A stretch of 64,000 nt of DNA, taken from the NCBI RefSeq assembly GCF_000143415.4, contig NW_003314380.1:20924-84923 (forward strand). Reading direction: 5' to 3'. This DNA comes from Selaginella moellendorffii. Its lineage: Eukaryota > Plantae > Lycopodiophyta. The notes under the pieces are model-generated. The model worked only from the letters and a program-made list of their open reading frames with translations, was not told the DNA's origin and made no database searches. Of the stretch, positions 57,773 through 64,000 are shown piece by piece (positions within the stretch are counted from its first letter, which is position 1; each line of letters begins with the position of its first letter). The position numbers were made by a program, and so were the translations under genes.

Positions 57773-59190
57773 ATGGAGGAGGAGGAGGCACACCCCGGCA
57801 GCGCTGCTTGTGATTTCCCAGTGCTACGCGTGGTCGGCGCATTGGAACGTGTGAGGCCGCTCCCGGCGGGGCGGCATTCTCTGCTGGCTCGGATCGCGCG
57901 AGGTGCGCGCTCCGTCTTGGATCACCGGCCGGAGGATTCCGTGGCGCTCAATGCCGAGCGCGCAATGCTGCTCTTCAGCTCCGCCGCGCTGGGGTCTCGA
58001 ATCAGCGGCCCCCTAGGTCGGAATTCTTCTCCTCCCGGTAATATCTCTTCCAGGCCTAAAGAAATTAGAGAGAGAGGGAATGATCCGGACAAGAGGCTGC
58101 GTCTCACTGGCTCCCACGCTGTAAGTTTTCCACGATCTTCCTTGCAAAATTCTAGTTTTGATTGTTATTGATCAACTTTTCTTTCAAAGTTCTAGTTTTC
58201 TTCGATCGTTCCAGAGTGTAACTTTCTTGGTTTTTTGTTTGAAAGTTCTGGTTTTCTTCAATCGTTCTAATGGAGAACTGACTGTTTTCGATCAACTTTC
58301 TTCGTTTTTCTTTCTAGATTGGATCGAGAACCATGGTGGACAGTGTGATCGAGGGGACGAGCATCCAATTCACAGAGCTCCGTGTGAGAATTATCCACAC
58401 GCCTCCAATCCCTCGACTTGCGGATGGACGAATCTCTCTCACCGCTGGGACTGACTTGCGTTGTCGCCATCGTGTCGCCGTGGAGAGCATGATGTGGTGC
58501 AAAACTGCTGTAATTTTTTAGCACCAATCAGTGTGTGTTCTTTCACATACTTCTTTTCTTACGTTTTTCTTTTTTTGTTCTTCATTGCAGTTCTCAAGAC
58601 GATAAACATTCCTTGTCGAGCATCGTTTCCAGCACCGACTTTTCGTCGCCACCGGCCTGGGGGATTGCAACCTCTCACAAGTGAGTAAATCTTATTCTAT
58701 TTCTTCAGTTCTTTCAAGCAAAGAGATACGATTTTCTATGCCATTTGTTTTTCGGCTTGTGCAGATTTGCCAGAGGATTAAGCGTGTTTTCCAGATACAG
58801 CAACGATCACTACGCCGGGAAGAGCGTGATCTTGCAGGTATGTTCGTGCAGCTTCCACGACGATGCGAGAGAAAATTTAAATGGCATTTACTTGTCGTAC
58901 AGGCTGTTCAGAGGCACGGGAGGAATACTATATCGCCGATCTGCTCAGTTGCCTCTAAAGGGCGAGTGCAAGCTGGAATCACATGGAAGAGCACCATTCA
59001 CTGCAGCAAAGGTTGTTTTTCTTCTCTTCCATTGTTTTCTTTACAAATTCGTGTGTGCTCGCCTGTTCTCTTCCCAGAGAATGGAAGCGAGGATTTTTTC
59101 CAGGTGAAAGCGCTCTGGAGCCAAAAAGGCGCCTTCTCCGTGCTCTTGAAAGCCCAGCTCGGGGATCCAGTAGAATGGTCGCAGTGAGCA
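57773..59190 (+). CDS. Hypothetical multi-exon gene (frame not fully resolved; possibly degenerate)
   Basis: GC-rich first exon from ATG 57773 and several strong GT/polypyrimidine-AG introns. No family recognised. Confidence 0.4.
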
Positions 59191-59614
59191 AAGAGAAAAA
59201 GAGATTTTTTATGTAAATAAGAGATTAAAAAAAGCTTTTCCAGCCAATCAGCAAGCCGAGAAAAGCGAGAAAACGCGAGAAAATACCGATTTTTCGGAGC
59301 TCGCCAGCCAAGTGAAGCGACAGTATCTCAGTTCTTCCCTAAAATAGCGGGAGTCAACTGAAAGAACACGCTGCCCGGCGGTTAGGCCGCGCTGCCCGGC
59401 AGTTTAGTTAGCGGCATTTCAAAGTAGCGGGCAGCGGGCAGCGCCTATAGCTCCCGACACTCAACTGGAAAGAGTGTTTTGTGCTGCTCTAGTGTCCCCG
59501 GCGGCGGCGGCGGCGGCGGGAGCTTTCTTTGCCAATTCTTTGCCAAGATCAAAGGGGAGAGCAACAGCGCTGGATCTAGAGCTCCACCGAGCGAGTGTGA
59601 GTGGATTTCTTGGC

Positions 59615-59962
59615 ATGAATTTGTGTGGAATTGGGCTTCGAAGTGTTAAGATCTCTCCCCAATTGGAGGCGGAAGATCGTAGGATGAGTGGGAGCCAGGC
59701 CGCAGAGGAAAGGAAAGAGGAAGAATGCGCGACTCCAAAAGGGCGGCAGCACCAAATTCCCGAGCCAGCAGCGTGGGCGCCGCCGCAGCCGCCCAACAAG
59801 CCCCGCCCCGCCAAGAGGAACAGCAATTGGAGCAGGGATTTCTTTGTGGTGGCTGACGATGATGAGATCTTCGCTCCACTACGCAACGAGCAGCATCACC
59901 AGCCTCGAAAGGTCCACAAATCCGAGCTCACGATCCCCTGCACAAATGCAGTGAAGTGGTAA
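59615..59962 (+). CDS. SIAMESE-RELATED (SMR) cyclin-dependent kinase inhibitor
   Basis: Ordered SMR motifs ECATPK, HQIPEP...PPQPPNKPR and RDFF...DEIF in a short intronless ORF. Confidence 0.82.
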   Translation: MNLCGIGLRSVKISPQLEAEDRRMSGSQAAEERKEEECATPKGRQHQIPEPAAWAPPQPPNKPRPAKRNSNWSRDFFVVADDDEIFAPLRNEQHHQPRKVHKSELTIPCTNAVKW

Positions 59963-60328
59963 TTGTTAATAGTACATTAAAACTAACTTAATTATAATTA
60001 ATGTTTATATTAATTCAAATGTATATATATTTATAAAGGGTGATTTTCCTTTTCTTATCAACGAGGGACCATCGAATATTCTTTGAATTTGAACACCAAA
60101 ATCAGCCACTGGGTTTAGCCGTCCGATGACACCATCCTACGGCCCAGTTTTGATCTTAGAGAAAATCCCCGGGTCATCCAACCGGCGGCGAAGGATCACA
60201 GACGAATCCCCCGAGCTAGAGAACGGGCGCTCTGATCCCTCGACTCCCGCGGTCTCGTCGCTTTCTCGCCACGTTTCTAAGATGTAGCCATCCATTTTCG
60301 ACAACGCCCCTGTGCGCGCTGGCCGATC

Positions 60329-61085
60329 ATGGATGCGTCTGGGGGGATCTCCCGTTCAATGGCGAGCTCAATAGCCAGGAGTTTGATTCCTTGCTTCGGT
60401 TTCTCGAGCAGCAGGAGGAGAACGAGTCCTGCGCTGCTGCCTTCGCATCGGCGCTAAAGCATGGTGACGCGCCAATGCAGGCAGAGCAGTCATCAAAGGG
60501 TGAGTCAAAGCTCTTCTTTTACTCGCTTTTCCGCTTACAGGTTTTCGGGAAGACGCATTGCTGCAGCGTTTCTCGTTGGAACGAATTCACTCCGGAGATG
60601 GAGGGGAGAATTCTTGTTTTCAAGAAGATCAGCAGCACCAGCACGACATTCTCCAGCAGGCACGGCCAGAAGATGCAAAAAGATATCTCCACCCCATAGC
60701 TGCAACAGAGAAGCTGGAAGAATGGTGGAAGAAGAACATAGAAAATCCGTATCCGACGGTAAGATTCTTGCTTCTTATGGTCTTTTCTTCCCTATGTATA
60801 GAAACTAACACTTGCATCTATTCAGGACGAAGAAAGAAGTGAGTTGGTAGCAGAGACAGGATTGAGTGAGCAACAAATCTCTTACTGGCTCAACAATAAG
60901 AGGAGACGCACAAAGACGGTGATTTCATCCTGTGTCGTGGTTCTCAAGGAATGTTACCGCTCTAGAGGGCCACCAGCCCAACCATGTGGTTTCTGTCGTC
61001 GATTACCTGATTGATCTGTTTTATAGGGCATTCTTCACGCAGCATTGCACAACGAGTACTGGAGACTCATTGCATTCTTTTCTAG
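60329..61085 (+). CDS. Divergent TALE-class homeodomain gene (5' start frameshifted or uncertain)
   Basis: Spliced HD ATEKLEEWWKKNIENPYPT|DEERSELVAETGLSEQQISYWLNNKRRR (intron 60759-60825). 5' and 3' ends are approximate. Confidence 0.8.
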
Positions 61086-61574
61086 CGTGAGTGCACTTTG
61101 TTATCGAAAGCAGAGGAAGTTCCTCCAGTCGCATTGATCCAATCGACGATACGTTGTCTATGAGCCGAGCATCTTTACACGAAGGTGGAAACGTTGCATA
61201 TGCAAGTAAAATACATGACTTGCCTCATTTAATATTTACAGCGATGTCCCAGCACTCTCAGATCACTGGCTTCAATATATTCTTTCACGTAGCTCCTCAA
61301 ACGAGATAATCGACATATACGACATTGCTGTAATATTCTTAGAATATTCTGTTATACCCAAAGGATTCTGTCAAGGTTTTAAATTGACAGTTTTAGAGGC
61401 AATAAAGGATAAAAAGAACATTAATTATAATAAAATTAAATCCAATCTCAAATTCTTAGTGGCAATTGTTAACTAATAGAGGTTCAGAGTTTAGATCCTA
61501 TTTTTCAGTTAATCTGCATGTTGCATGCAGTCACATTTTGTTTTATTATCGTATTTATTAATCCAATTGATCTA

Positions 61575-61710
61575 AATTTTATAATTTATAAACATAAAAT
61601 TAATCTTATTGCATATCAACCATTAGATGGTAGAATATCTTAGGATATTTAAGCATATTCTAGGTATATCCATTACCATCCTTACAGGTTTGATTAAGCA
61701 AACCTAAAGC
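61575..61710 (-). repeat. AT-rich dispersed repeat, copy 2 (inverted relative to 11797-11945)
   Basis: CAGGTTTGATTAAGCAAACC and TTAGATGGTAGAATATC are reverse-complement matches to copy 1. Confidence 0.7.
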
Positions 61711-62559
61711 TTTATTGTAATAACTAAAAGCAAATTTTGTATTGAGACTAATTATTAGAGTAAGAATTCTCTATTTATAATGTAATTTTATATAAATTAT
61801 TTTTATTAATAATATAAATATCTTTCTTGTCTTATTTCTCTGTAATTTAATATAAAAAATTTATTAATAATAATGTAACATCCATAATATTGCAGATCTA
61901 AAGCTTAGTATTTGAATCCATTCCAACAAATACATAATAAGAAATATATATATGCTTGCAAGGGATGAAAATTTTACCATAGACCTCCCCATTTATAGTA
62001 TCAATTCCAAGGTTGAGAACTATAAATTTGTGATGATGGTATTATTGTTTGATACTGTTACTTTTAACTTTTGCCTTCAACTTTCAACTCCAATGCCTTT
62101 AAATATGTTATTCTTTGAGCAAGTATTTGTAATTTTCACATATTTGTTTTTTTTTTTTTTTTTTAATTTCTTGAGAAAGTTTTGGGCTTGAGCTTCTAAC
62201 TTTGGTTGTAAAGTGTTTTTTTTTCAAATTTAAAACCTATTTAAATTAGAGTAAATTAACTAATACATGTTCTAGTAACCTATGCTGCAACTTATGTTGA
62301 ATTAAACCATATGAATTGATCAAAGTGTTGTGGAGGATTAACATTGTCCCTAAAAAATGGAGCTGGAATATGAGTGCTTATTATAATCTGTTTACCACAT
62401 AATTTTCCTTTAGTCCAAGCAAAACATTTGACAGTGAATTTTGTTATCATCATACTCCCTTATTTAAACGTGCTATTGGCATATGGCATCTGGCATCTTT
62501 TATTCCATTTTTAGAATATTATTTCTGAATATACTTATAATCTAATGATTCAAATTCAA

Positions 62560-63170
62560 AAAATTCAAATAGATGGCATAGATCAAGTGCCAAAGGGGTG
62601 GCAACGCTTCAATGAAGATCAGCATCTCACTATCAGGTTTGTCTTTTTTTGTGTGTGAAACTACATTGTAAACCTTGGTGTGCAGCATGCAGCAGTGGTT
62701 GTACACAATAAGATGTTCATGATTGGAGGGAACCACTATGTGAACGATGTCCAGGTATGTAGCTTTTCGCTCTTTAATAACTGTTTGTTGTGGGTGGCCA
62801 CTCAAAAAACTTCCCCGACTCTGTCTCAGGTTAATGTAATGCAGAGGAGCTTTGAGATCCATCTCACTTCAGTGCTCTCTATCTCCAGTTCATGCTTTTC
62901 ACACAGGGACTTTCACTTTCACTTGCAGGAACAAGATCCAGACTTGTAGTCAAGTCGCAAGGGGAAAAAGTTGAGGAAATTGGTGAAATGGCTTTATATT
63001 TTTTCATTTTTGTGTTATAACTAAAACTTTGCAGCATTATGCAAGACAATGATTTAAATCCAAGCCTTCAAGAGTACACCCTGCTGTAAACAACTCTCCT
63101 CCATCCCTCTTGCTGCCATCAGCAAATGGTGGGATTGTCACGGAGATGAAAATGGAAGAAAGTGCTCCAC
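62560..63170 (+). pseudogene. Kelch-repeat (ACBP4/5-like) gene fragments
   Basis: Exon HAAVVVHNKMFMIGGNHYVNDVQ bounded by AG/GT; no complete gene. Confidence 0.6.
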
Positions 63171-63984
63171 TATTATAGAGAGATTGATGTTTGCAATGAA
63201 TGGTTTTCACCTCTAGTATCTGTCTACCTCGATTGTCCACGTGGTGGAGAACAACCTCTGGGCAATCGCCATGGACCACTTTCAAGCTACATTAGTGCCG
63301 GAGATCTGGAAGAAAAGAGAGGCTTTTGTATGCATGGAGTTCACATCGATGGAATGGACATGCTCAAAGTCGGTGAGGTGGCCAAGGAAGCCATTGCGAG
63401 AGCTCAGAGGGGTGACGGCCTGATATTAGTGGAGTGTGAGACTCATCAGTATATAGAGGTCATTCTCTCACCAATCTGGACGAGCTCTGCAAGCCTGGTA
63501 AGTGCCTTGCTTTGTTCTTCACTCTCTTCTGGTTCTTTAGAAGCTAGACTTTGTTCTTTCTTTCTGTCCAGAGCAAAAGAGCAAGCATGCCGCTTGCAAT
63601 CCCATCCCTCCTTTCAAGAAGTACTTGCTGGAAGAAAGACTAGCCAGTGAGGCAGAGTTGAAAGCCATCGAAAAGAAGAACGAGGAGATTGTGGAGGATG
63701 CCGTGGAGTTTGCGGACACATCCCTTCTTCCACCTCATATCCAGATCCTGGAGAACGTTGGTGGATCGCTGAAGCTTTGGAATCTGGTGGGATGGGAAAT
63801 ACAGGGGCGAGGATCCAGCCTTCACACAACAAAAATGTTTAGAGACAGGATGCTTTTTGTTGTGGGTGGCCACTCATAAAACTTCCCCGACTCTGTCTCA
63901 GGTTAATGTAATGTAGAGGAGCTTTGAGATCCATCTCACTTCAGTGCTCTCTATCTCAAGTTCATGCTTTTGACACGGGGACTT
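62786..63984 (+). repeat. ~127-bp direct repeat (62786-62912 and 63858-63984)
   Basis: TGTTGTGGGTGGCCACTCA...CAGGTTAATGTAATG...GGGACTT occurs twice with few mismatches. Confidence 0.92.
63235..63815 (+). pseudogene. Plastid-type pyruvate dehydrogenase E1-alpha 3' fragment, frameshifted
   Basis: VVENNLWAI, GVHIDGMDMLKV.EVAKEAIARA.RGDG..LVECET, RGHSL and AELKAIEKK.EEIVEDAVEFAD are spread over different frames. The intron is retained and the N-terminal half is missing. Confidence 0.9.
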
Positions 63985-64000
63985 AACTGATGTTGCACCT

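Follow-up and report, generated by a model that had tools for sequence, protein, structure and literature searches.

Within the 64,000-nt stretch of Selaginella moellendorffii DNA analysed here (the window), a split TALE homeodomain at 60541–60918 on the plus strand marks a locus that is, in all likelihood, a polymorphic, transcribed and decaying KNOX-derived pseudogene. Its lesions, its mosaic structure, the pattern of its substitutions and the fact that it has neither annotation nor relatives were observed directly, and the locus most likely makes no DNA-binding protein. In the history proposed for this relic, a KNOX-family homeobox gene would have lost its partner domains long ago, so that the homeodomain, its intron at position 27/28 and about 110 upstream codons would be what is left, and the 3' end would have gained a filler of scrambled amylase sequence. 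Selection would no longer uphold the locus, each allele seen having disabling lesions of its own, and the weak residual transcription would probably give an unspliced non-coding RNA. Since each lesion was seen in one allele only, the lesions and the death of the locus may be recent, and the reading frame may still have been intact in the ancestor from which both haplotypes descend.

The window is gene-dense plant DNA, with genes for VPS11, a PPR protein, PfkB, DUF716, a RING E3 ligase (7 kb upstream of the homeobox locus), a glycosyltransferase, carbonic anhydrase and pyruvate dehydrogenase E1-alpha, and the public annotation of both haplotypes contains no gene between window positions 59188 and 62970. 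The RING protein has 100% identity to a database entry whose sole cluster mate is SELMODRAFT_451319 of S. moellendorffii, and the homeobox locus is located between the carbonic anhydrase and small-ORF genes on one side and pyruvate dehydrogenase E1-alpha on the other. All parts of the homeobox locus described here lie on the plus strand; the exons were searched singly, and the blocks were joined only for codon counting. The former start region (60329–60346) consists of ATG 60329 and a run of six G at 60341–60346; in the window haplotype it does not share the frame of the coding sequence that follows. The frame opened by this ATG has 42 codons and stops at 60455–60457, and the frame DLPFNGELNSQEF...AEQSSK (60346–60499), which has no ATG, is one base out of register with it at the G6 run. 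The latter frame forms coding block 1 (DLPFNGELNSQEFDSLLRFLEQQEENES...MQAEQSSK, 60346–60499), in which no domain is recognisable and which gave no Pfam match. It is followed by a 41-nt GT..AG segment (60500–60540) whose splicing, judged by sequence and frame arithmetic, is needed for block 1 to continue into the homeodomain frame; its removal would link block 1 in frame to ...RYLHPIAATEKLEEWWKKNIENPYPT, ending at 60758, and with the segment retained the homeodomain frame meets a TGA at 60501–60503 and has no ATG. Coding block 2 (60541–60758) comprises a linker and homeodomain residues 1–27 (KRYLHPIAATEKLEEWWKKNIENPYPT) and lacks 18 nt after ~60677 in the window haplotype. A 67-nt GT..AG intron of phase 0 (60759–60825) separates it, at the KNOX-type homeodomain position 27/28, from coding block 3 (60826–60918), which carries homeodomain residues 28–58 (DEERSELVAETGLSEQQISYWLNNKRRRTKT). 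Past the homeodomain the frame stays open for 31 further codons until a TGA at 61012–61014, and this read-through tail (VISSCVVVLKECYRSRGPPAQPCGFCRRLPD, then stop; 60919–61014) is the antisense of an alpha-amylase fragment and not a domain.

The Pfam profile Homeobox_KN matches the first piece with its positions 1–12 and block 3 with its positions 13–40 (32.4 bits, E 8.5e-8), so that the match is continuous across the 67-nt intron, and it is far above chance level; the Pfam profile Homeodomain reaches 25.4 bits on block 3 (60826–60918). With W48 as the reference, the residues are numbered L16, W19 and W20, followed by three additional loop residues, then P24-Y25-P26-T27, the intron and D28, and helix 3 contains L49, N50, N51, K52 and R53. 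From W20 to L34 there are 17 residues, compared with 14 in typical homeodomains, and PYP occupies positions 24–26, as in the TALE superclass. KNOX-type residues are present at W19-W20, PYPT-D, LV.ETGL (A/V-E-T/S-GL) and QI, but helix 3 reads SYWLNNKRRR and the F49-I50-N51-Q52 signature of KNOX helix 3 (NWFINQRKR) is not kept. From L16 onward, 20 of 46 residues are identical to Klebsormidium KNOX2, and 20 of 46 to the class II KNOX protein Sm135843 of S. moellendorffii (~43%); the canonical KNOX2 homeodomains are nearly identical to each other in the alignment block shown. A PDB search with residues 28–58 gave no help in assigning the class, as generic homeodomains (engrailed, DUX4) outranked the TALE members.

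The position of the intron was compared with those compiled by Joo et al. 2018 (PMC6219170), where the homeodomain introns of Klebsormidium KNOX1 and KNOX2 lie at 27/28 (Table S2), the chlorophyte KNOX intron lies at 48[2/3], and the Klebsormidium GLX gene has introns at 24[2/3], 44/45 and 60/61, 24[2/3] being the plant BELL-specific position. The intron at 60759–60825 falls between T27 and D28 in phase 0, and no intron interrupts the homeodomain at codons 24, 44/45 or 48; BELL affinity is not indicated, as there are no introns at 24[2/3] or 44/45 (the P24 and Q44-I45 codons are intact) and no POX match. With its intron at the streptophyte KNOX1/KNOX2 position and not at the BELL positions, the homeodomain is, judging from its sequence, KNOX-derived but very diverged. 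The locus does not have the make-up of a processed pseudogene (intron loss, poly-A tract), the KNOX-type intron still being there, and the retention of this intron points to an origin of the relic in place or by a DNA-level event. No match to KNOX1, KNOX2, ELK or POX was found with Pfam at E up to 10 in the upstream open frames from 59962 to the homeodomain, the search for KNOX1 and KNOX2 covering both haplotypes, and visual comparison with the ELK region of Klebsormidium KNOX2 shows no more than a weak likeness in LLQRFS...HDIL. The preliminary description of this DNA had reported the TALE PYP loop, the WW pair in helix 1, the SYWLNNKRRR helix with N50, an intron after PYPT as in KNOX genes and the lack of KNOX1, KNOX2, ELK and POX upstream, and all of these statements hold; its term KNOX-derived is backed by the WW pair, PYPTD/E-E, LV.ETGL, QI and the 27/28 intron, and its term fast-evolving is fair in view of the low identity to canonical KNOX homeodomains.

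Differential lesions were observed among the three alleles. The window is part of scaffold GL377684.1, and it was aligned with the sister haplotype, GL377652.1 (L002); the background divergence between the haplotypes is 1–2%. In the window allele, the frame is shifted after the ATG and 18 nt (SKKGCR) are deleted just before or at the start of the homeodomain N-terminal arm; L16, W48, N51 and R53 are kept. These 18 nt are kept in the sister haplotype, in RNA run X5 and in organism B (RNA run X12), indicating that the window deletion is the derived state. In the sister haplotype, four extra bases after the ATG bring it into frame, but the product would read MDA-stop (TGA at codon 4). In place of window 60713–60843 the sister haplotype moreover has an inverted copy of the sequence that precedes it, a perfect 36-nt duplication with a spacer of 23 nt; gone with the replaced stretch are the last part of helix 1, the PYP loop, the intron and the first part of helix 2. 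The remaining helix 2–3 codons are out of frame, and Pfam gave no Homeobox_KN match on this allele. The third allele, found in the independent DNA run X2, has G5 instead of G6 in two contigs, which worsens the frame at ATG 60329, and carries the replacements K52N and R53W. An intact coding gene is thus not seen, frameshift, stop and deletions being spread over the three alleles.

The one-base offset of ATG 60329 at the G6 run, which had been suspected in the preliminary description to be a possible sequencing error, was confirmed and is real: an added G at 60341–60346 that would restore the frame occurs in none of the listed variants. That the frameshift and the mosaic are errors of sequencing or assembly and the true locus is intact is very improbable. 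Sequencing errors are common in homopolymer runs, and the reference, a draft of 2011, contains both haplotypes, but among the listed contigs of the independent DNA run X2 none has a run other than G6 or G5, the scaffolds of the two haplotypes have the same general structure, and the junction with the amylase fragment recurs in X1, in X2 and in RNA contig X5 record 27.

The substitutions at the locus also fit neutral evolution. Between the window and the sister haplotype, four non-synonymous and no synonymous differences were counted in the alignable codons, coding block 1 showing three and none, respectively; when the listed X2 differences were added, the codon count rose to at least 11 non-synonymous versus 1 synonymous, a small sample of 12 substitutions. 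The 11:1 ratio is compatible with omega = 1 (P = 0.26), is marginal at omega = 0.5 (P = 0.05) and rejects omega <= 0.2 (P < 0.001), and canonical KNOX genes have an omega of about 0.06 (PMC4617109). The proposal of the preliminary description that the locus encodes a factor of altered specificity, or else a dominant-negative mini-TALE, finds no support, given the stop at codon 4 and the loss of the homeodomain core in the sister haplotype and the 11:1 substitutions. A confirmed frameshift, neutral substitution and no expression had been named there as what would speak against this proposal; the first two were found and the third was not, as RNA contigs of low depth exist.

Transcription of the locus was observed in RNA runs of several studies. 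In run X5 a small neighbouring ORF (59684–59962) is covered at depth 52 with a poly-A end at 60023, which identifies X5 as RNA. This ORF has 92 codons on the plus strand and is unannotated on both haplotypes; it gave no Pfam match and no hit in a word search covering proteins of 0.55–1.75 times the query length, and its motifs C.TPK....IP....PP.P.KP and EIF presumably resemble those of SIAMESE-related CDK inhibitors. At the homeobox locus itself, the X5 contigs have a depth of 2–7 over 60162–60338, 60369–60678 and 60849–51. The contig of X5 record 26 is colinear with the genome over 60369–60678, indicating that the 41-nt segment is unspliced there, and no RNA contig spans the 67-nt intron (joint 60758/60826). 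The RNA contigs end where the sister-type allele diverges from the window, which suggests that the expressed allele looks like the broken one.

These RNA data bear on an alternative in which at least the window allele is a live, fast-evolving homeodomain-only KNOX protein, started at ATG 60475, with the 41-nt and 67-nt introns spliced out, and acting through an altered DNA-binding specificity (N50) or through competition with KNOX/BELL dimers. In principle, removal of the 41-nt segment would allow a protein of ~143 residues to be made from ATG 60475; the frames agree in this splice model, and introns in Selaginella are very short. The structural core of the homeodomain is kept in the window allele, and RNA contigs are present. 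However, ATG 60329 and ATG 60461 lie upstream of ATG 60475, both in other frames, the RNA contig retains the 41-nt segment, the sister haplotype of the same plant is without the homeodomain core, the third allele carries R53W and the substitution pattern is compatible with neutrality. The locus is, in addition, unannotated and without relatives, and the C-terminal tail of the protein would be antisense amylase, and such a live gene is considered unlikely. A presence/absence polymorphism of a working homeodomain-only KNOX derivative, in which some alleles encode ~140–200 residues with the N50 helix and no MEINOX, is likewise a doubtful reading and of low probability. If it were true, the homeodomain-only protein would bind KNOX/BELL target sites, or compete for them, without forming dimers, and lycophytes would have in it a counterpart, inverted in architecture, of the KNATM and MpKNOX1A/B microproteins.

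The 3' end of the decaying pseudogene abuts, at homeodomain residue 58, a scrambled alpha-amylase gene fragment (60920–61291, minus strand), which was recognised by PDB sequence search and contig matches. The stretch 60928–61002 (minus strand) matches residues 276–293 of barley AMY1 (E 4.4e-6) and 61085–61174 (minus strand) matches residues 223–242 in the PDB search, and the middle piece (61025–61072; GILHAALHNEYWRLI, read at 61027–61089) is inverted relative to the other pieces; Pfam gave no match on these short amylase pieces, which are too short. Highly expressed mRNA contigs of 2616 nt (depth 150 in X5 and >2000 in X12) match the fragment at ~93–97% over stretches of 48–62 nt, show joints between opposite strands and then pass into unrelated sequence, indicating that the parent amylase gene lies elsewhere and that the fragment here is scrambled. 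The fragment is present in both haplotypes. A 58-nt segment further along (window 61181–61238, L002 19758–19815) is flipped between the haplotypes, with 96.6% identity in reverse, and the flip was also seen as opposite-strand joints in DNA run X2 and RNA run X12.

A mosaic of two unrelated genes with local inversions would also be expected if the gene fragments had been captured by a transposable element of Pack-MULE or Helitron type, and the homeodomain piece had not existed here as a gene of its own. A 29-nt inverted repeat of 83% identity flanks 60013–61409, and a very high-copy short repeat of MITE-like appearance lies directly downstream of the relic (61525–61726, ~200 bp), where the DNA-run depth rises to as much as 26,000 versus ~20–40 around it. 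However, the inverted repeat consists of short, imperfect and AT-rich arms, the left one lying inside the 3' UTR of the neighbouring transcript, and the DNA depth over 60100–61300 is single-copy, as in the neighbouring sequence. The homeodomain, moreover, has ~43% protein identity to any KNOX, whereas the amylase pieces have ~93–97% identity to their parent in short stretches, and with the homeodomain so much more diverged the two fragments were not recent joint arrivals. Capture by a transposable element was dropped as the main reading on account of the single-copy depth and the great age difference of the two fragments, and it is regarded as improbable. Further downstream, the pyruvate dehydrogenase E1-alpha region contains a 132-nt direct repeat (62781–62912 and 63853–63984; 95% identity, 1072 nt apart), each copy of which overlaps a short minus-strand ORF beginning MDLKAPLHYINLRQSRGSF; at window 62432–62931 the alignment with L002 is rich in gaps and its identity falls to 61%, suggesting that the two haplotypes differ in structure there.

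Close relatives of the decaying KNOX-derived pseudogene were not found in the protein collections searched. The 73-residue piece with homeodomain residues 1–27 had only two weak hits among 1.84 billion representative proteins (P0001 and P0002), and P0002 is an unrelated repeat protein with no aligned stretch. A word-index search with the 100-residue stop-free piece covering the first half of the homeodomain returned no candidates, which is weak evidence as its range was proteins of 0.55–1.75 times the query length, and in an exact-sequence look-up three ORFs of the window were absent from the protein collection. Other genes of the S. moellendorffii genome are in this collection, so the blank searches carry some weight. 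Rfam gave no match on 58000–64000. The best match, P0001, has NPYPT-x-EE-K/R in common with the relic and WFNN (N50) in one domain, but at 41% identity along 34 residues (E 8e-5) it does not count as a useful relative. P0001 itself is an intronless eukaryotic protein of 517 residues with six tandem TALE homeodomains (Homeobox_KN, 246 bits), encoded at L001 3001–4554 (metagenome contig ERZ23491133 scaffold_11063).

Among known systems, class II KNOX proteins (Sm135843 and Klebsormidium kfl00118_0070) share with the relic the TALE homeodomain, W19-W20, PYPT, D/E-E-K/R, LV.ETGL, QI..W..N.R.R and the phase-0 intron at 27/28. The relic differs from them in having L49, N50 and K52 where KNOX has F49, I50 and Q52, in being without KNOX1, KNOX2, ELK and an intact frame, and in its neutral-looking pattern compared with their omega of ~0.06. 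KNATM of angiosperms and MpKNOX1A/B of Marchantia are truncated KNOX derivatives that have been proposed to modulate KNOX/BELL dimers (PMC8476127); these keep MEINOX, have no homeodomain and are intact and expressed, whereas in the relic only the homeodomain is left and it is broken. Mukherjee et al. 2009 (PMC2775110) counted five or six TALE genes of Selaginella as unclassified and one KNOX gene as a pseudogene. The relic agrees with these in species and in having a TALE homeodomain without KNOX or BEL codomains, and it may be one of them.

The relic adds one unannotated KNOX-derived member to the known orphan TALE homeoboxes of Selaginella, which matters little alone; it indicates that at least one of these orphans descends from KNOX. 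It also offers a clean case of a gene caught dying, with three alleles bearing three different sets of lesions, and it advises caution in that altered recognition-helix residues in orphan TALE proteins need not mean a new DNA-binding specificity.
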